From Prasinococcaceae sp. CCMP 1430 (lineage: Eukaryota; Plantae; Prasinodermophyta), in assembly GCA_013416795.1 (NCBI GenBank), contig RQSC01000010.1, forward strand, positions 86,836 to 146,640: a stretch of DNA of 59,805 nt, written 5' to 3'. A program made the translations under genes and the position numbers. Under the pieces are notes generated by a model. The model saw nothing but the letters and a program-made list of their open reading frames with translations, made no database searches and had not been told where the DNA came from. This document shows positions 843 through 55,237 of the stretch, in pieces (positions within the stretch are counted from its first letter, which is position 1; every line of letters begins with the position of its first letter).

Positions 843-3800
843 TCACGCGCCGGCCTCGACCCCGTGGCTGCGTGGCTGGTCGCCTCCGCGCGCGTCTCCG
901 CTCCACGTCCGATGGCGGCAGATCTCCTGCGTCACTCCCACGCGATGGCGCACCGACCACTTGGCGGCCGCGCGCTCCCGACCTCGGCCGCCTCGCGTGA
1001 GGCACAGGAAGGGGGCGCCACCGGCGTCGCCCGATGCCCTGGGCGCATCGGACGGTGGGTCGCACACTCCAGCGGCGATGCCCACGGCCTCAGCCGCCCG
1101 ACCGTCCTCGCCTGCGAGCTCGCGGAGCGCCACCTCCAGATCCGTGTGCGGCAATGAGGCGCGCTCGAAGTGCGCCGCACCCACACCTACACAATCGGCG
1201 CCGCGCGCGACACTGCCGACCGTCGCCACCGCCGCGGCGGCGCACGTGAGAGACGCGGCCACCTTCGCCTCCGACGCGGCGTCGCCGTCGGCCGCGAGCG
1301 CCTGCCGCCACCTTGTTGGGTCATCGCCCATCGCCACACGCTCGTCGACAGCTAACGGCAGCACTGACGCGATTGCGCCGGATGCGGCCGCCTCCTCGCC
1401 GACCGCAGAGCCGAACGCAGAGAGGCTCAGCCACGACGAAGGTGCGCCCGCCGCACCGGCATCGACGTCGTGAGAAGACACGCCGCCGCCGCCGCCGATT
1501 TTCTCTTGTGGGGCCACTGGCCTGCGGCGCCCCGCCGCCTCCACCTGCAACGCGCGGAGCCTCGCAAGCAGGCCGCTGGGCACGTCGCCTGCAGCGTCAG
1601 CAGCGTCGCCCAGAAGATCCAGCTGTCCCCAACCAATCAGCGCGATGCGCATCTCGCGCACGAGCAGCACGTCAGTGGTGGCATCTCCGACCGAATTCTG
1701 CTGACGAGTCGCGGCGGCGGCGGCACTGGCCACGGCCGCGCGCGCGGCACGCTCAGCATCGCGCCGGTCACTCGCCCGCGCCGCACGCCTCCACGCCGCC
1801 GCTTGTGGTGACGCGCGCGCGGCCGCCAGCACGCGGATCTGCGTCGCCAGGATCGCGTGGCGCGCAGCGCCCTGCGCAGTGCTTGCCCCTCTGCCGAGAG
1901 CAGCCACGAGGGCCGCTTGCATGGACACCTCAGCGCACGCGGCGTGCACTGCGGCCGCCCTGAGCCAGCGTTCCGCGCCGGCGCGGGCATCAATCTCGCC
2001 CTCGGACCAGCACATCATGCCATCCTGCGCAGCGGCGACCACCTGTTCTACGCCCATCACGCCAGGAGCACACTCCGTTGTGATTTCTTCAGGGCCAAAT
2101 TTGCACGCCTTCATGAGCTCCACGCCAAGCGCACCCTGCCCGGCTGCAAACAAGTCGACGACCAATGCACGCGCGGTACGTGCGTCGAGCAGGCCGCCAC
2201 TGCTGCGAATGAGCTCGACAGCGTCAGTACACGATGCCGAAGAGTCTTCGAGCGCACCGTCACCCGAATCTTCCCGCGCCGCGTTGCAGCGCAGACGCAG
2301 TGCCAACTCGAGCAGCGGCGCCGCACCGCACGCAATCGCCATCGCTGGTACGTCCATGCCCCAGGCCTCGCTCGGCTCACACTCACACACAGCCCCGTGC
2401 CACAACAAGCACATATCCGCAGCCTGGGAGGCCACGAGCTCGCCAGCACGCCGAAGCATGGCCGCGCACTCCGAGGGCGCTTCCCCAGCGATCAGCCACA
2501 GCAGCGCCGCCTGCCCCCCGCGACCGTCATGAGCAGCGCGCTCTGCCTCCTCCTGGTAGAGCGTCGCCATATCGAGCCCTAGCGCGGCACCGAGCGATTC
2601 AGCGGCGTGAAGGTTCTCAGCGCGCAAAAGAGACACAAAATGCTCCACAGGAGGCACTGGCGTGGCCTCGATGCACACCACCTGCGTGTCCGTCCACACG
2701 AGCACGCTCAGACAACCGCCATCCGAGCCTGAGGGAGCGCGCGGCAGCGGAAGCAGCGCTCGTGCCTCGCGCGGGCGCACGCCAGGCAAGCGGAGGCGCT
2801 GCAGCACGAACGGTGGAGGGGGCGCGTCGTCGCTGCCGACGGCGTCGCGGCGCAGGGCATCCTTTCGGTCCACCCAAGCCTCAAACAGGGAGCCCATGGC
2901 TGGTGCGTGCACTTGGACGCGAGCGGCGACAGTGAGCGTGCTCTCCGTGGCCGCGTCGCTCGAACCGCCGTGCAGTGCGAAGAGCAAGTTGTCCACCATC
3001 GCGGTAGCACGCGTCCCAGGAGGTAGTCTGTGCTTCTCGACGGCTCTCGCGGAAGTGCGCCTCAACGTGCCTGCGGCCGCGAGCTCGTGTGCGTCGTACA
3101 CCTCGAGCAGGCAGTGGCGCGCGTCCAGGCGAGACACAAGCGCGCCGCTGCGCCCGCCGCATGGCTGCGCATCGACGCGGAGCAGTGCGGGCGACGTCGC
3201 ATTCATTGCAAGCTCGGTAGGCAATCGCAGCGCGAGGATCGTGCCACGGTCGACCTCTAGCAGGACCCTGCTCCCCTTGGCTGGCGTGGCGAGAAGGAGC
3301 ACACGGCTGCCAGCTTGCAGTGCCTCTAGAGACACGACGCGCAGGCCAGCTGGATGGGTCCATGCGGCGCGCGAAGCGCCTGCTGACACATGCACACGCC
3401 CCGCCGCTGTTCCTACCGCGACGTGGTCCCGCAGCGCGGCGACGCACGTCACGCGCTCGTGTGAGTCGCACACAGCTGGCAGCTCTTCGCACGCGGCCAT
3501 GAGCTCGTCCGCGCCGCGTGCCGCTGCTGCAACCCAGTCGCGCCCGCCGAGGGGTCGCAGCAACGCGTGCAGCGCAGCGTCGCGCGCGCCAAAGGCCCTC
3601 CCTCCCACATCCACGAAAACGAGCTCCAGCTCGGGATCGCCGGCTCCTGCGCACTCTCTGAAGGCGACACCAGCAAGCTGCGGCAGGCCGCTCCCAGAGC
3701 CCTCGCCGCCACACTGGAAAGTTGCGGCGTCCGTGCAGGCGGCGCCGCCAGCTCGCACGATGATGAGCGTCTGATCCCTCCCAACGCCACCTCCGGCGTG

Positions 3801-45358: not shown

Positions 45359-47299
45359 ATGTCCTCTGGTGGCATGGTGGGCGTGGTGATGTCGTGCCTC
45401 GGGCTCGGCGGCGAATATCCCATCACGTCCGTCGTCATGTTGGTCGCGAGCGCGGTGATGGCGCGCATGCTCGTCCAGGCGTGGAAGGCGATGAGCGATG
45501 CACACAGTGTGGCGGCCAACGTACGGTCGAACTTCGCCGAGCTCAAGTCGCTCGTGGAGGAACACCGTGCGCTAATGCCCGCAACTGAGAGCGCCTACAT
45601 GTCGCTCGCGGAGGATAGGGCCGCCAAAGCCAAGGAAGCTGCGAAGGCGCCAGCGTACTTCGCGGCCCTCCCCGGGCAGAAGGAGGTCAGAACGATCGAA
45701 AAGAGGCGCCGGCCAAGCCTGCTCAAGCGTCTGATGTCCCGCACGCCTACCTCGAGCGGCAAGCCTGGCGGCCAAAGGTCGTCGATGTCCCCCGACACAC
45801 CCTCGACTCCAAGCGGTGGCGCTACCCCGTCCCTCTCCGCGAGGCAAAGCCGCAAGGGTCTCGCGACGCTCGTAGCCCAAAGCCTGCTGAACGAGGAGGA
45901 GCGCGAGGATCTCAAAGAGATGGTTGTGGCGCTCAAGTCACGCGTACCCGACCTTCCCAACAATATGATCATCGGAGACGATGCCGATGCTACCTACGAG
46001 GTGAGCGACGCGTGACACCGGACGCCCCACGCGCCGAGCCTGTCGCGCGTGCCACAGGTGCACATCGCTCGCCGCCTTAGGCTACAAGATACGCTGCGGG
46101 AGCGCCCTCTACCAGTCGGGTGCACCCAAGAGGCTTGCGCAGATCAGAATGCTGACATGCCCCCAAACTGCCGTCTTCCAAACAACATACCCACCCCCCG
46201 CGCGTGCTCTCATCCCATGCGGCAGCGCTTCCTGGCGGCGCGGGGTGGCGACGTGATGGCCGCGGAGGCGATGCTCAGGAACACGCTTGCATGGCGTGAG
46301 AAGTTCGCGATCGAGTCGATCCTGCGGCGCCCCTACGACCTCGGCAAGCTGCAGGCGTACTGGAAGTACCTGCCGCACACGTACTTCGGACATGACAAAG
46401 ATAGCCGCCCAGTGTATTGGAACCGAGTGGGCGCCGCTCAGTGGAAGCTGTTGATGAAGCGCTGCACGGCAGATGACCTCGCCCACTTTCATATCATCAT
46501 GATGGAGTACGTCAACAAGACGCTCATGCAGGAGGCCTCGCGCATGAAGGGGGGGACGCAAGACCAGGCGGTGTACATTTTGGATATCTCGGGATTCTCG
46601 CTCTTCGATATCGTGTCGACGCCCGTCGTCGACTTCCTCAAGGGCCTCACCAGTCTCCTTCAGGACCACTATCCGCAGCAGCTCGCCGCAGCGGTCGTCA
46701 TCAACGCTCCGGCGAGCTTCTCGACGGCCTGGAGTGTGGTGGACATGCTGGGCATGGACCCTAATACCAAGTCCAAGTTCCGTGTGGTTTCGGTGGGCCA
46801 AACGCACGGGGCGCTGCGTGAGATGATCGACGACAAGTACATACCTACGTTCCTTTGCGGCGAAGGCGAGCTCGAGGGCGATTTGTTCAACCTAGCGGGT
46901 GGGGAGGAGTTGTCCAAGGGCACGGCGAAGGGCACAGCGCTCACATCCTTCCAGACACGCTTGATCAACCACACTTTTGGTACCGTCCGACTGAAAGGCG
47001 AGTGGGCAGTATCACACGCCTGTCTGGATGCTCATCTGGGCGTGCGCTCGCAGGCGCGCGCCAGCAGTGCGTCCGTATGTCAGGTCTATTTGGATTTCCG
47101 TGGAAAGCCATTCGCGCGGGTATCGCGACGGCGCAATGTGTGCGAGTTCGCGTGTGTGTGCAAGTTTGTGACGCCGGTCTATTACTGGCTGCCCTTTCAG
47201 TTGAGCAGGTTGGCGCCGAAACCCGCGCCGTTGGTGTGCCCAACGGCGAGCGCAGTGGTGAGGATGCCGAAGACGAGGAACGGCTGCGCGTTTGCCTGA
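45359..47299 (+). CDS. Sec14/CRAL-TRIO lipid-binding protein with N-terminal TM segment; 3' end uncertain
   Basis: Exon 45359-46000, intron 46001-46225, then RFLAARGGDV..AEAMLRNTLAWREKF, GHDKDSRPVY, YILDISGFS, QDHYPQQL..INAP, MDPNTKSK, IPTFLCG. The ORF reads to 47299; a GC-AG intron 46998-47083 is possible. Confidence 0.82.
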
Positions 47300-49005
47300 T
47301 ACTTGACATCCTGTGTTCGCTCGCGCCGGCGTAGCGGCGCGGCCAGATGCTGTCAGCACAGTGCACGCACTTGACGCTCCCGGCGGCGCGCGGGCCAGCT
47401 GCGCGCGCGCGCGTGCGCGCGCGCGACGGTGGCAGGAGTTAAGCGCGCGCGCTTCGACGTACGTTTTCCACGGGATCCGGAAGGAAAAAGCGCACCTGCG
47501 CGACGATCTGTGGGATGATGAGCAAGGTGAGCGCGATGGCGTAGGGGTCCTCGTGCTTGACGAAGTGCAGCCAGAGCGCAACCAGGATCTGAAAGCCATC
47601 GATCGTGCCCACGGTGATCCACTTGGCCGTGTCGATGCCGAACTCGACTGGGATAGACTTGAGGCCCAACTCGCGATCGCCCTCGATCGACTGGGGCCCG
47701 CACAAGGGAGAGGCGGGCGGGTGTCAGAGCGCGCGCGAGCAGGTGCGCGCAGGCGCGCGCGGCGATGGCGCCGGATCGCCCCGCGCACCTTGAAGTCGTT
47801 GACGATGGCGATGCCCAGCCCCGCGATTGAGTACATGAGCGTGATGACGATGATCTCAGGCGTGAGCGTGCTGTCGTCGAAGACCGCCATGCCCGCCCAC
47901 CACGGGAGCGCGATGTAGGACGCGCCAAGGGCGTACGTCCCCTGCCAGCCGTTGGCCTTGAGCTTGAGCGGCGGCGCGGAGTAGATGTACGAGATGAAGG
48001 TGCCAAAGAGCGCGATTGCCGTCAGCGTGGGGAACTCGTGGCCGCGCCACGTGTCGAGCTGCCAGGCGAGTGCCCAGCCGGCGGTCATCAGGCCGAAGGA
48101 CTGAATGGCCACGTCCACGCCCGTCACCTTGCCGCTCGGGATGGGCCGGTTGGGCTCGTTGATGGCGTCAATGTCCTTGTCGTACCAGTCGTTGATGGTC
48201 TGCGTGAAGCCCGTCAGGCAGGGGCCGCTGAGGGTCATGCAGAGGACCGCCTGGAAGATGTCGCGGGGGAAGCCCTCGATCCAGTGGAAGTTGCCGCTGG
48301 CGGCAGCACCGCACAGCACGCCCCACACCACGGGAATCCACGTGCCCGGCTTGGTCAGCTGCACCATCACCTTCCACTTGGGCAGCTCCTCCGTTGCCTC
48401 TGTCTGACGGAAGCCCAGGAGCTGCTGCGCGTCCGCGTCGCCGAAGTCCCCCTCCTTCGCCTTGGTCTCCGCCGCGTCGTCGGTGGCGCGGGCGGCCGCG
48501 CGCCGTGCGCGCGGCGCACGTGCTCCTCCTGCGCGTGCGCGCTCGCGCAGGACGCCGCGCGGCGCGGCGCGGCGTGCGCGGCCTAGCCGCCGCGCCACCG
48601 CGCCTCCGTCCGTTCCCCCTGCGGCGCGTACTCCCGTCTGTGTGTGTGGGGGGTGGGGTGCGGAGGGGTGGCCCGAATCCTCGGCCGCCACCCTGGCGCC
48701 CGTGCCCGCGCGCACCCGGCGCACGCGATCCTCACAAACGACCCACTTCTTGCCACGGCGTGCGCGCTCGCCCCCGCGCGCTCTAGCTAGCTAGCGCCAA
48801 CGCCGGCCGGGCGCACCCGAGCGCACCGGCCGGACTGGCTCGCGTCCCCCGACCCCCACCCACGCACCAATCCTCCGGCTGGCGGCCGCGCTCTCGCTCG
48901 TTGCGCGCCGGTTTGGGAACGAGCGCAGCTGATGGAGGATGGTGTACACCTCGACCGAGCCCCCCGGTCTAAACGCGTCATATAGGGTGTGTGCTGGCGC
49001 ACCAT
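47197..49005 (-). CDS. CHLG: Chlorophyll synthase, 4-exon model
   Basis: QLTKPGTWIPVVWGVLCGAAASG, TQTINDWYDKDIDAINEPNRPIPSG, YSAPPLKLK, ALGASYIALPWWAG, GIAIVNDFK|SIEGDRELGL, DVKYQANAQPF. Exons 49005-48868 (tentative), 48637-47789, 47690-47463, 47310-47197. Confidence 0.96.
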
Positions 49006-49467
49006 CGCGGATCGACGCGGGACGAACCCGGGGTGTCGGCGCGTTCCCCCTGGCCCCGCGCTGCGCTCGTTGTGGCGCGGCGCTGGGAAGAGACTGGGCG
49101 GAGTGGGCGAAGGAGGGAGGGGCGGCGGCAGGCGGGCGGGCGGACGAGCGGGCGGCGTTGCGGCGGGCGAGCCCGCCGGTCGCAGAGGGGCGCTTGGTGC
49201 CCCCTTCCTTTCCACTCCCCGGAAGGCCGCCTGGCGAGCGTGCGCCTGCGCGCCACACGCGGCGAGGAGGAAGGGCGGCGCGGCGCGGAGGTTGGGACTT
49301 CCCGGCGGCTCTCACATCGCGCGGCGGGCGGAGCCGGAGCGGCGCCCCGCAGGCGGGCCCGAGGCGCCCCGCGGACGCGCGCACGCGCAGGCGGGGTTTC
49401 TCTGACCCTCCTCCCCTGCCGGCCCGCGGTGGCAGCGCGCGGGGCCCTTTGCGCCCCCGTCGGGTGC

Positions 49468-49638
49468 ATGCTCGGCCGCGCGGCGCGCTGGGCGGCGTGG
49501 GGCGCGGTTGGATTTACGCTGGGCGTGTGGGCGACGCAGAAGGCCGGGGGTGCCGTCCCTGACGTCGGGAGCGCCGCCGCGGCCGCGTACGGCGCGGTCA
49601 CCGGCGACGGCAAGAGCGGAAGGGGCAAGAACGAGTGA
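49468..49638 (+). CDS. 56-aa single-TM microprotein, STMP1 (short transmembrane mitochondrial protein 1)-like
   Basis: MLGRAARWAAWGAVGFTLGVWATQKAGGAVPDVGSAAAAAYGAVTGDGKSGRGKNE*. The Gly-rich TM helix followed by Q...VPDV and a basic tail resembles the STMP1 pattern (from memory, not searched). Confidence 0.55.
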   Translation: MLGRAARWAAWGAVGFTLGVWATQKAGGAVPDVGSAAAAAYGAVTGDGKSGRGKNE

Positions 49639-49698
49639 GGCGGCGCGCCTGGACAGCGGGGCCCAGAGAGCCGGGAGGGGTGCGGCGTGCAAAGGAGC

Positions 49699-51928
49699 AT
49701 GCCGACCGCGAGCAAGTGCGTGCGCGGCAATGAGTACACCTCGTTCCGCGTCGACCTTCCAAAGGGGGAGGTCGTGACGGCCGGTGAGCTGGCCCGCGGC
49801 GGCGCGTCGACCGTGTATTACGGCGAGTGGGCCGGCCGGCGGGTCGCCGTGAAGCGGCCCAAGCTCGCGACCACCGCCGACATGGACCGGTTCCACAGCG
49901 AGCTGGGGATGCTCGAGCGGCTCGCGGGGCACAAGTACATGCTCACGTGCGTCGCAGCGCGCGCCCACCCGCCCGACTACTCTTTCTACTTCCCGCTCAT
50001 GGAGAATGGCACGCTGGAGAGCATGCTGCACGAGCAGCGCTGTGCGCCGACCGTCACGACCGTCGTCGTGCACGCCGTGGAGCTCGCCGAGGCGCTCGCG
50101 CACATGCATGCGCAGGGCATCGTGCACCGGGACGTCAAGCCGGGAAACGTGCTTCTCGACGCCGAGTGGCGCGTCAAGCTTGGTGACTTTGGCCTCGCTG
50201 CGCACGTGGAAGAGCTCGAGGCTAGCCTGCAGAACGCCATCTACTCGTCGGAGGATTTGGAGGGCAAGGAGGTCGAGGCGCGCTGGGTGCAGTCGCGGCG
50301 TGGGCGCAAGGCCGGCGGGTTCCAGAAGCAGCACATGATGGGCACGATGGAGTACCTCGCACCGGAGGTGCTGAAGCGCCAGGTGCACCGCCCGAGCGCC
50401 GACGTGTACGCCTTCGGGGTGACGCTGTGCGAGCTCTGCACGGGTGTGTTGCCGTACTCGGACCGCGAGCGCAACGTGGCACTCGCGCACACCGTCCTAG
50501 ACATGTCGTACAACGAGGCTGACCTCTCGAAGGCAATTGCCAGCGAGGGGCTCAGGCCCGTGCCGCCCTCGGACGAGGCCGCGCCCAGGGAGCTGAGAGA
50601 GATCATCGAGGCATGCTGGGCGCACGATCCAGCGGACAGGCCAACGATGGCGCGCGTGGTCGAGCGCCTGCGCGCCCTCGCCAACGACCTCGACCCGGGC
50701 GGCGTGGACGCGCTCAAGGTCTTCTGGCGCGCCCCGCCACCGAAGCAGCCCTCGGCCGCTGCTGCCGCCGAGGCGGCCGCGCTGGCCGCCGCGCTGGGTG
50801 GCGATCCGTCGCCGCCTCCCGCGGCCTGGCTGGCGAGCGCAGGCGCGTATGCCCCCGAGGTGGGCGCGGGCGTGGTGGCCACATCGGGGGCCCGTGGGAT
50901 CGACCGAATGGAGGACGCGCACGCCATCGCCACGCCGCTCGAGTGCCCGGGCAACCCAGGCAACGTGCACTTCATCGGCGTGTTCGACGGCCACCGCGGC
51001 GCCGCGTGCGCGCGCTTCGCGGCCGACGCGATGCCCGCCGCGCTCCCACGTCTGTGGGCGGGGTGCGAATCGCCTGCGGCCGCACTGCAAAAGGCCTTCC
51101 TGGCTGTCGACGCCGCCTACGTCGCCAAGGAGGAGGCGGAGGTCGCGGCACTGCCTTCGGGCGCGCGCCCGCCAGCGCCCGCGGGGTGCACGGCGCTGGG
51201 CGTGCTGGTCGCCGGCAACACCATGGCGATCGCCAACGCAGGCGACTGCCGTGCGGTGCTCAGCCGCGGTGGCGAGGCGGTCGCGCTCACAAACGACCAC
51301 GGCCCCGACGTGCCCGCCGAGCGCGCGCGCATCGAGGCGGCGGGCGGCGCGCTGCAGTGCCACGAGGGCAAGTGGCGCGTTGGCGCGCCGCGGCTGGCGG
51401 TCAGCCGCGCGCTCGGCGACCGCGACGTCAAGGTGTGTCGCGTGCGCGCTCGCGCGCAGGCCGCTCGCCCGCTGCGCGCGGCCGCGCGCAACGAGCGATG
51501 CGCACAGCGCATTCATGCGTACGTGCTGGGCGCGCCACTCACGCGCGCGGTCGGCCCTGATGCTGTGATGCTGACGCTCCCGCTTCTCCCCGCCCGCGGA
51601 CGCGATTGCCCTCCTCGTGTGTGTGCAGGGCGACGGTGTCAGTGCCGAGCCGGAGTTGCACACCTACGAGTTGAGCGCCGAGGACGACTTCGTCATCGTG
51701 GCATGTGATGGCCTGTGGGACGTCGTGTCGAATGAGGAGGCAGTCGCATTCGTGAAAGACACCGTTAAGGAGCCCTCGATGTGCGCCAAGCGGCTTGTGG
51801 CCGAGGCGGGCACGCGGCTCAGTGGCGACAACGTCACCGTGGTGGTGGCGTTCCTGCGGCCTGTCTCCACCGCGCAGACGGTGTGGACCGCCGTGGAGGG
51901 CGACATGCAGGAAGACGCGCGTGAGTGA
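49699..51928 (+). CDS. Protein kinase-PP2C fusion protein (plant kinase and PP2C-like domain-containing family), 2 exons
   Basis: Kinase: VAVKRP, HRDVKPGN, DFG, GTMEYLAPE, DVYAFG. PP2C: MEDAH, VFDGHRG, ANAGDCRA, VSRALGD, ACDGLWD, GDNVT. Intron 51433-51628. Confidence 0.93.
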
Positions 51929-52191
51929 GGCCGCGCCTGTTGAAGCGCGTCCGTAAGCAGGCGAAGCTGCGGCATTCTTTTCTGCGGGTTGGTCGGAGGG
52001 CGGCCACACCGCGCCGGCGGCGCCGACGCCGGGCCGGCGGGCCCGTCTCTTTTCCGACCCCGCGGCGACCGAAAGGGTGGCGCGCCCTTCCCCTCTGCCG
52101 GCTCCTGTCAGACGCGCAGCCCGTCACCCACGCCCTCACCGACGTCCTCAATGCGGCCCGCGCCCGGGCTCCGCGGTGAGTGGCGCGCTCA

Positions 52192-52242
52192 CTGAGCGCG
52201 CGCGCGCTGAGTGCGCGCGCTGAGTGCGCGCGCTGAGTGCGC
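52192..52242. repeat. Short tandem repeat, ~13-nt unit CTGAGTGCGCGCG x3-4
   Basis: Direct inspection; intergenic, downstream of the kinase-PP2C gene. Confidence 0.8.
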
Positions 52243-52450
52243 CCGTTGCGGCCGCGCGCGACGCACCCGTAGGGTTCGTATTTTACAGATTTGATACATT
52301 TATTGAGTGCTTCGTTTTCTCGCTGCGACAACCCTAAACAAGCGGCGTTTGGTTCGTTAGGGGATTGGCGGCGGCGGCCGGCGCTCGCGCTCGCGCACGC
52401 CAGCGGGGTCACAGCGCGCGCGCGCGCGCAGCGGGTCGGCGGCGCTGGCG

Positions 52451-53599: not shown

Positions 53600-54354
53600 T
53601 CACCCTGCACGCTCCGTGTCGCCTGTGTGTGCCTCTCGCTCCCGCTCTCGCACTGTCTGCCAGGCATCGCATGCCCGCGGCGGGGCGGTCGCCTCTTTCT
53701 GCCTCTGGTTCTCGGCCGGCAGCAGGGCCAGCACCCTCGGTACCCTGGGCAGCGTCGCGCGGGCGTTCTTGCCGCCGTCGCTCCCCGTCGGCGGCGACAC
53801 TCGAACGCGCTTGCTGCGCCCCTCCTCCTCCCCGCCGCCGGGATCGCACGCGCGTGCTTGCCCGCGCGCAGACAGCGGGCGCCCCTCTTGGCGCTCCCGG
53901 GGGCCGCTGCTGCCACTGTTCGCCCCCGATTCGACGGCGCCCGCGCCGCTGATGCTCTGGCTGCGGGTGGGGCCCGCCGCCGCGGCGCCCGCCCGCTGCT
54001 CTCCGCGCGCGCGCGCCAGGGAGTGCGTGTGCGCGGTGCTGCTCTCCGCTCCGCTGTCGCCTGATCGGTCGCTGGCGCGCGCGCCGCCGCCGCAGGCGTC
54101 GCTGCCGCTGCAGCACTCGCTCGAGTCCTCGTCCGCCTCCGCGGACGCGTCCCGCCCCGCCACCTGGTCGTGCGCTAGCCCCATGCCGAGGCCCGTGCCC
54201 CACGCCCAGTCGGCGAACGCGCCCACGTCCACGCGCCCCGAGGCGTCGTGGCACTTGAGCGCGGCGCCTCGCGCGCGCACGACGTTGGCCCAGTAGCTGT
54301 CCCACGGCGACGCCGCGCCGCCCGCGGCGTCGGGCGCGCGCTGCGCNACCCCAT
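53600..54354 (-). CDS. Hypothetical protein (start interrupted by a single N at 54347)
   Basis: Coding-like SPWDSYWANVVRARGAALKCHDASGRVDVGAFADWAWG followed by a low-complexity region with an NLS-like RSKRVRVSP. ATG 54354 is out of frame across the N. Confidence 0.35.
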
Positions 54355-55237
54355 CCCTCTGTAACTGTGCGTCTGCGCGTCCGCAACCGTAACGACACGG
54401 GTTCAAAATATCGGCACAAATCGCGCCTCCGAGGAACGAAAATGCGGAAAAGCAGACCCTCGTGCGGAGTCTGGTGCGCGGCTGCGGGTATGGCTCGCCC
54501 GTGGGGGTCTTTCCTATGAATGAGGATGGAATCACCCAGCGGGCCGCCCGCGGCCACGCGAACCGAATCGCCTCGGATCGAAGGGGATTCAGAGCGGGCG
54601 GAGACGGAGAGGGGAGACGGAGGTGCGTGCGCGCCCAGCACGCCATGCGCGTGCGCGTGCGGGCCTGCGCTCGTGTGTGACTCTGCTCTGCCCGTGTGTG
54701 TGCGCGCGCACGTGGGGGCCGCGAGCGCTCACGACCAACCGCGGGTGCCCGCACTTCCACTGCTGCCTCCATGCCTCTGCGAGCCGCGGCCAGCGGTGCA
54801 TACATTTGCACTCGAGCACTTCGCGGCCAACGGAAGCTTTTCCCGTGGGTACATATGACGTATCTTAAAGTGCATTTATTGGGATGCGCGGGCGCCCTCG
54901 GAAGGAGGGGAGGCGTCCGGACCCCGTCGCCCAACGCTCTTGGATTCCACAGATACGCTCGTGTTTATTGGAGATTGTGGAATCCATATCGCGTTTGTTG
55001 GTGTTATTGAGTTGGAAAATGGAATCCATGGCGCGAGCGGGGCGCGCCTGCGCGCAGCGCGGGCGCTGCGCGCGCGCGCGCGCGCGCGCGGGCGGGAAAA
55101 TCGGCGGCGCGCGCGCTCGCGCGCCCGCGAAGATCTTTTTCCCAGCCGCGGAAGGGGGCGGCGCGCGAGGCCGATTTTTCTGTCGCCGGACGGATGGAGG
55201 GCCTCCTCCCATCGCGATGGCGATGCGTGCCCGTGTG

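Follow-up and report, generated by a model that had tools for sequence, protein, structure and literature searches.

A small upstream reading frame and a kinase-PP2C gene on one mRNA of Prasinoderma coloniale: a candidate leaky-scanning bicistron

This work deals with two consecutive open reading frames (ORFs) in a stretch of 59,805 nucleotides (nt) from Prasinococcaceae sp. CCMP 1430 (contig RQSC01000010.1, positions 86,836 to 146,640, assembly GCA_013416795.1), the whole of which is called the window below and is numbered from its first letter. A small frame, ORF1, is followed by ORF2, a gene encoding a fusion of a protein kinase with a PP2C domain, whose two exons sum to the 677 residues of protein P0070, PRCOL_00003233-RA, of the marine green alga Prasinoderma coloniale, as established by an exact-sequence cluster look-up. 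The parts of the locus, including its 3' untranslated region (UTR), are as follows.

49266..49467, + strand: 5' leader ahead of ORF1, free of ATG; minimum extent, based on the start of the transcript contig L045
49468..49638, + strand: ORF1, a small-peptide ORF of 56 codons plus TGA, opened by the first AUG of the mRNA
49639..49698, + strand: inter-ORF spacer of 60 nt, free of ATG in all frames and bridged unbroken by RNA contigs
49699..51432, + strand: kinase-PP2C exon 1, 578 codons, covering the protein kinase domain and the greater part of PP2C, opened by the second AUG of the mRNA
51433..51628, + strand: the sole intron, 196 nt, GT..AG, within the PP2C domain, its joint seen in contigs
51629..51928, + strand: kinase-PP2C exon 2, 99 codons plus TGA, completing the PP2C domain
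51929..52343, + strand: 3' UTR; minimum extent, followed to 52343 in L045 and to 52202 in the contig X1 record 3

The nature of ORF2 was clear from Pfam searches carried out exon by exon, in which exon 1 matched both Pkinase (6e-42) and PP2C (1.3e-34) and exon 2 matched PP2C (4.2e-19). The annotated N-terminus of PRCOL_00003233-RA is indeed ATG 49699. Homologues of the protein numbered 57, and full-length ones in green algae and land plants share 35-47% identity with the protein, some of them being named 'protein kinase and PP2C-like domain-containing protein'. We know of no established function for this plant-wide fusion.

Translation of ORF1 would start at ATG 49468 (context GGGTGCATGC) and stop at TGA 49636-49638, and that of kinase-PP2C would start at ATG 49699 (context GGAGCATGC), for coding lengths of 171 and 2034 nt. 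The two ATGs share a frame at a distance of 231 nt, a single stop, at 49636, interrupts this frame, and no ATG occurs in any frame in 49471-49698 or in 49266-49467. Around the ORF1 AUG, T at -3 and C at +4 are found both in P. coloniale and in the sister lineage described below, while the kinase-PP2C AUG has A at -3 in P. coloniale and lies in GCCATGG in the sister lineage; these contexts were graded by the general -3/+4 rule, which may not equal the species' own consensus. The original prediction, made from the sequence of the window, had been exact on all of this anatomy: ORF1, spacer and ATG coordinates, shared frame, lone TGA, absence of further ATGs, and start contexts.

Such anatomy must however be read against the base composition of the region, in which the local content of guanine plus cytosine (GC) is 75-81% (78.7% over a 553-nt leader) and long ORFs are present in all six frames. 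First-order Markov simulation of this 553-nt leader's own composition gave a probability of 0.59 for 231 nt without ATG, 0.63 for a run of 55 codons without a stop, 0.34 for just one in-frame stop over 76 codons, and 0.47 for at least one ATG-initiated ORF of at least 50 codons in the leader. The anatomy of the locus is thus real but weightless by itself, because chance simulations reproduce each of its features, and the case for ORF1 therefore rests on evidence from outside the window. Among P. coloniale-type haplotypes, an 8-nt insertion-deletion (indel) polymorphism is observed at 49429-49436, 32 nt 5' of the ORF1 ATG. An open frame enters ORF1 from 48973; since this indel breaks it, ORF1 probably begins at its ATG and not further upstream.

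One spliced mRNA, starting at or upstream of 49266, carries ORF1 and then kinase-PP2C, as shown by assembled transcripts. A contig from a culture run (X1 record 3) corresponds to 49328-51430 joined to 51627-52202 with 0 mismatches; it is spliced, and runs unbroken over ORF1, the spacer and the whole of kinase-PP2C. The spacer is also bridged in three further runs, one from another culture and two from marine metatranscriptomes (X2 record 7, X3 record 15, X4 record 21), and the splice joint of the 51433-51628 intron was seen in contigs of all four runs and in L045. The latter, a Joint Genome Institute (JGI) transcript contig, corresponds to 49266-51433, 51630-52202 and 52209-52343. In its first 436 nt, L045 holds only two ATGs, that of ORF1 and that of the kinase, so that the ORF1 AUG is the first and the kinase AUG the second of the assembled message.

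The same layout was found in a second lineage, probably a sister species of P. coloniale, represented by Tara Oceans contigs that encode a kinase-PP2C 75% identical to that of the window; divergence between the two lineages amounts to about one substitution per synonymous site. Directly 5' of this kinase-PP2C lies an upstream ORF (uORF) of 54 residues (L031:1039-1203), whose start context, TGCATGCTC, is the same as that of ORF1. The sister-lineage spacer measures 28 nt, versus 60 in P. coloniale, and again no ATG occurs between the ORFs; 193 nt separate the two ATGs, which therefore differ in frame, and TAA closes the uORF. Two spliced transcript contigs, L001 (L031 1134-1274 plus 1514-3511) and L046 (L031 981-1274 plus 1514-3551), each span both ORFs. 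L046 includes the entire 54-residue uORF and 58 nt of leader, and the uORF's and the kinase's are the only two ATGs in its first 254 nt. The single mRNA that the original prediction had proposed for the two ORFs is thus borne out by spliced contigs spanning the pair in both lineages.

The two-ORF arrangement is common to P. coloniale and this one sister lineage. Between the two, the spacer is conserved neither in sequence nor in length, and the leader upstream of ORF1 could not be aligned. A profile built from the two uORF peptides gave no match in six-frame translations of 28 loci with a more distant kinase-PP2C and, over all loci fetched, matched these two lineages only. The expected synteny of the pair in other algae therefore held in the sister lineage and failed at the more distant orthologous loci.

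Conservation and codon-position composition both suggest that ORF1 is a real translated coding sequence (CDS), weakly constrained, on its pattern and not on its exact residues. Semi-global BLOSUM62 alignment of the ORF1 peptide with the sister-lineage uORF peptide gave a score of 75, which none of 5000 shuffles reached; translated GC-rich noncoding windows scored 16.8 on average (standard deviation 7.1, maximum 38), which places the peptide alignment at a z of about 8. The ORF frame aligned best, with this score of 75 versus 46 and 59 in the other same-register frames, and identity between the uORFs was 0.62, 0.54 and 0.46 at codon positions 1, 2 and 3, respectively. GC at the three codon positions (GC1, GC2, GC3) was 0.71/0.68/0.89 in ORF1 and 0.83/0.63/0.94 in the sister uORF, next to 0.74/0.52/0.90 by codon phase in the kinase CDS and a flat 0.85/0.80/0.85 in the leader. 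The excess of GC3 over the mean of GC1 and GC2 was 0.196 in ORF1 and 0.213 in the sister uORF (permutation P 0.0026 and 0.0005), and none of 872 noncoding windows reached an excess of 0.195 (maximum 0.170). The coding conservation on which the original prediction had made ORF1 depend was thus found, in the form of a homologous uORF and of GC3 periodicity in both species.

Polymorphism within the lineages was also considered. No indel was found within the ORF in seven P. coloniale and nine sister-lineage haplotypes; by comparison, the leader at 49328-49467 has five single-nucleotide polymorphism (SNP) sites among strains in addition to the 8-nt indel, and the sister-lineage leader just upstream of the uORF contains frameshifting indels. 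Over the seven haplotypes, the SNPs of ORF1 are W8L, G27A and one synonymous change. The spacer, with two SNPs in 60 nt, resembles the noncoding flanks, and the population diversity of ORF1 is intermediate between these flanks and the kinase CDS, on tiny counts.

As regards the peptide itself, the pattern shared by the two lineages comprises M-L, R7, A-W-G, G15, L-G, Q24, P31 and a tail rich in Gly and Lys. Residues 1-31 hold 11 of the 20 invariant columns (M1, L2, R7, A10, W11, G12, G15, L18, G19, Q24, P31), and the tail, rich in Gly, Lys and Ala, differs in length between the lineages. A cis-acting stalling-peptide uORF is not supported, as conservation would then be expected at the C-terminus, close to the stop, and the N-terminal half holds these 11 of 20 columns. 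AlphaFold2, run on a five-sequence alignment, predicted helices at 2-25 and 32-46 at low confidence (mean predicted local distance difference test score, pLDDT, of 65). The product would be a peptide of 54-56 residues with an N-terminal hydrophobic glycine-zipper helix, a turn marked by proline, a further short helix and a tail rich in Gly and Lys, a build that suggests a small single-pass membrane protein. The transmembrane segment originally proposed for ORF1 is weakly supported: the best 15-residue Kyte-Doolittle window reached 1.19 in P. coloniale, which is marginal, and 1.80 in the sister lineage, which is adequate.

The peptide had also been likened, in the original prediction, to STMP1. 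At the level of profiles this likeness was lost, neither peptide matching any Pfam family at E <= 10, PF15054 (DUF4535/STMP1) included. In a word-index protein search ORF1 had no match and the sister uORF matched its own cluster alone, and an exhaustive HMMER search of the sister uORF against 1.84 billion representatives returned its own cluster and one low-complexity protein of 3157 residues, taken as spurious. A profile search of the PDB and a shape search of the ESM Atlas with the peptide gave no match either. By contrast, in a language-model search the clusters nearest to the sister peptide were those of DUF4535, with a score of 0.85, only a lead by the tool's own calibration, and 175-178 shared features, and the ten best family matches all agreed on DUF4535; the P. 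coloniale peptide was assigned to no family in the same search. Members of the STMP1/DUF4535 family range from about 45 to 57 residues and have one N-terminal hydrophobic helix, a size and build which peptides of 56 and 54 residues with a predicted N-terminal helix fit. After its glycine-spaced helix STMP1 carries AQNY, a place taken by AQQY in the sister lineage and by TQKA in P. coloniale. That the peptide is a very divergent member of STMP1/DUF4535 is a lead only, with roughly one chance in three of being correct, and the mitochondrial location originally proposed for it is likewise only putative.

We consider, with a probability of about 0.6, that the locus is a lineage-restricted bicistronic nuclear mRNA of Prasinoderma coloniale from which leaky scanning gives both proteins. 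From a mechanistic point of view, ribosomes scanning from the cap would start only partly at the weak-context ORF1 AUG; the remaining ones would cross the AUG-free 228 nt and start at the better-context kinase AUG. One message would then yield both proteins, and ORF1 would also throttle the output of kinase-PP2C. Leaky scanning is proposed here by analogy with Chlamydomonas, Chromochloris and Auxenochlorella; 54-56 codons are, besides, long for efficient reinitiation. The layout that had led to leaky scanning being proposed from the sequence indeed agrees with the rules described for green-algal bicistrons (PMC7896298, PMC11291117).

Several observations weigh against such a bicistron. The length of ORF1, its AUG-free stretch and its single stop are not beyond chance, and no uORF of the ORF1 type was found upstream of kinase-PP2C orthologues at 52-43% identity. 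The RNA evidence consists of short-read contigs, which may merge overlapping transcripts, and low-depth contigs from three runs begin within ORF1, at 49482, 49487 and 49544. At the level of the peptide, BLASTP gave 31% identity with a pairwise E of 0.08, two of the three ORF1 polymorphisms change a residue, and the invariant population stretch of the sister lineage also takes in noncoding parts. The ratio of nonsynonymous to synonymous change (pN/pS) is 0.77 between the uORFs versus 0.29 for the kinase, and out-of-frame controls gave similar values (0.77 and 0.54), so that this ratio does not discriminate and was not counted as evidence of coding.

This pN/pS contrast is nevertheless what would be expected of a fast-evolving peptide with no job of its own, in an ORF1 acting purely in cis as a regulatory uORF that damps or conditions kinase-PP2C. 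Since in both species no AUG of the leader precedes that of ORF1, ORF1 must affect downstream initiation; residue-changing polymorphisms are tolerated, relatives of the peptide were found nowhere else, and uORFs abound in green algae (PMC7896298). For regulation alone, however, 54-56 codons and a conserved N-terminal half would both be superfluous, and such a role sits uneasily with GC3 periodicity in both species, with an ORF frame that aligns best and a third codon position that is the least conserved, and with a length and a helix/glycine pattern that have persisted across a divergence of about one substitution per synonymous site. We regard a purely regulatory role as unlikely, although a serious contender, and regulation and peptide coding are not exclusive of each other. 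The contig starts within ORF1 (49482-49544) could alternatively reflect two transcript populations, a long isoform with ORF1 from which the kinase is poorly translated and a shorter one, starting within or after ORF1, that is the real kinase mRNA, in which case the choice of promoter or start site, and not leaky scanning, would regulate; contigs cannot reveal transcript starts, and the long and short isoforms of Chlamydomonas CTH1 provide a precedent (PMC7896298). Yet the contigs in question have a depth of 3.7-7.9 in a stretch of 80% GC, where assemblies often end early, two deeper culture assemblies extend 140 and 202 nt 5' of the ORF1 AUG, and such a scenario gives no account of why ORF1 is conserved and bears a coding signature, which makes it decidedly improbable.

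Two further possibilities concern ORF1 as a mere extension of the kinase or as noise. Read-through of the UGA, also raised by the original prediction, would fuse ORF1 to kinase-PP2C as a membrane-anchored isoform, and the P. coloniale ORFs do share one frame with one TGA and no further stop. It is disfavoured because the sister-lineage ORFs are out of frame (+1, with ATGs 193 nt apart) and the uORF ends in TAA; moreover, the 60- and 28-nt spacers cannot be aligned, the P. coloniale spacer carries SNPs at the rate of noncoding flanks, and the annotated orthologues lack an anchor, their N-terminus being the kinase ATG. For the frame common to both ORFs in P. coloniale, coincidence, at odds of one in three, is the simplest account, and neither frame nor stop being kept in the sister lineage, we give the fused isoform very little credit. 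Hardly more credible is the view that ORF1 is open by chance within an untranslated, GC-rich leader: at 79% GC its length, the lack of ATG and the lone stop all fall within expectation, and long ORFs fill the six frames, but chance does not account for an orthologous ORF with the same start context at such a divergence, nor for the alignment z of about 8 and the GC3 periodicity in both species.

The surroundings of the locus differ between the lineages. In P. coloniale, the 5' neighbour (47012-48724, minus strand, divergent) is a UbiA-family prenyltransferase gene, assigned through Pfam PF01040 on the matching metagenome contig L041 and putatively chlorophyll-synthase-like; in the sister lineage it is a same-strand ORF without Pfam match (L031:1-772). 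Since the upstream genes differ, the uORF-kinase pair stayed together while its surroundings changed. The interval of about 48723-49145 between the UbiA gene and the kinase locus, covered by no RNA contig, may be a shared promoter region. Intron positions within kinase-PP2C differ as well: in P. coloniale the one intron, of 196 nt, lies within the PP2C domain and the region near the 5' end is free of introns, whereas the sister lineage has no PP2C-domain intron and a GT..AG intron of about 239 nt (L031:1275-1513) after codon 14. In the 3' UTR of P. coloniale, a perfect 13-nt tandem repeat (GCGCGCGCTGAGT, 3.3 copies) occupies 52200-52242; X1 record 3 stops at its edge, at 52202, and L045 is without 6 nt of the window there (52203-52208), which points to a variable length or to an error of assembly. 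An Rfam search of 48700-52400 gave nothing credible. Farther downstream, at about 54300-54400 of the window, ORF translations contain X, so that at least one N or ambiguous base is present.

A conserved Prasinoderma bicistron would carry a phenomenon that is experimentally documented in chlorophytes to a third green phylum. Prasinodermophyta are placed as sister to all other green plants, and leaky-scanning bicistrons, if true there, would either date back to the ancestor of green plants or have arisen more than once. The locus would offer a compact test case, with one intron and two leader AUGs, and a conserved translational gate on kinase-PP2C would be a handle for studying this plant-wide fusion. 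More generally, for small coding ORFs in very GC-rich leaders ORF anatomy is insufficient, and it is a sister genome and codon-position GC that reveal them. If the STMP1 link were true, a respiratory-chain microprotein and a signalling enzyme would be coupled on one message.

Comparison with known systems can be made at the level of the peptide, of the kinase and of the two-ORF message. STMP1, also named mitolamban or Mm47, is a mitochondrial inner-membrane microprotein of about 47 residues which interacts with complex III and aids its assembly and function (PMC8833175). Both peptides resemble it in size, glycine-spaced N-terminal hydrophobic helix and polar tail, and differ from it in that neither matches PF15054 and that P. 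coloniale has TQKA after the helix. STREMI is a vertebrate mitochondrial microprotein encoded by a uORF, with an STMP1-like C-terminus and a predominantly bicistronic mRNA (PMC13303939). As a small, STMP1-like, uORF-encoded peptide it parallels the present one only if the STMP1 link holds, and it differs in being restricted to vertebrates and in lying upstream of a gene unrelated to kinase-PP2C. That Prasinoderma captured an STMP1/DUF4535 microprotein into the kinase-PP2C leader, in parallel to STREMI and with leaky-scanning bicistrons not confined to chlorophytes, appears doubtful, at a clearly lower level of confidence than the bicistron as such. As for the plant kinase-PP2C proteins (Apostasia, Cryptomeria, Chlorella), ORF2 shares their full-length Pkinase and PP2C architecture and is itself not notably different; among the loci examined, the upstream ORF is found only on Prasinoderma-type genes.

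The closest known systems are the chlorophyte bicistrons (Gallaher et al. 2021, PMC7896298; Duncan et al. 2024/2025, PMC11291117 / PMC11892635). No description of bicistronic genes in Prasinoderma turned up in a literature search, and an ORF1-type peptide with kinase-PP2C is, as far as checked, not a described pair. The chlorophyte cases are known from long-read, proteomic and reporter work, and the Prasinoderma locus from assembled transcripts and sequence; its lineage also differs, Prasinodermophyta lying outside Chlorophyta, and conservation of ORF1 here reaches one sister lineage only. In chlorophytes, bicistrons are characterized by a small ORF1, a short inter-ORF distance, a weak ORF1 Kozak context and depletion of AUG before ORF2, and reporter experiments in the literature point to leaky scanning rather than to reinitiation or an internal ribosome entry site (IRES) (PMC7896298, PMC11291117). 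The present locus has the same order of a small ORF1 and a large ORF2 on one mature mRNA, with spacers of 60 and 28 nt versus published medians of 40-183 nt, and shares the absence of any other AUG before ORF2; by the general -3/+4 rule its first AUG would be weak and its second stronger. In chlorophytes too, the ORFs need no common frame, and TOM22 and OST4 exemplify the small proteins of membranes or organelles that ORF1 often encodes there.

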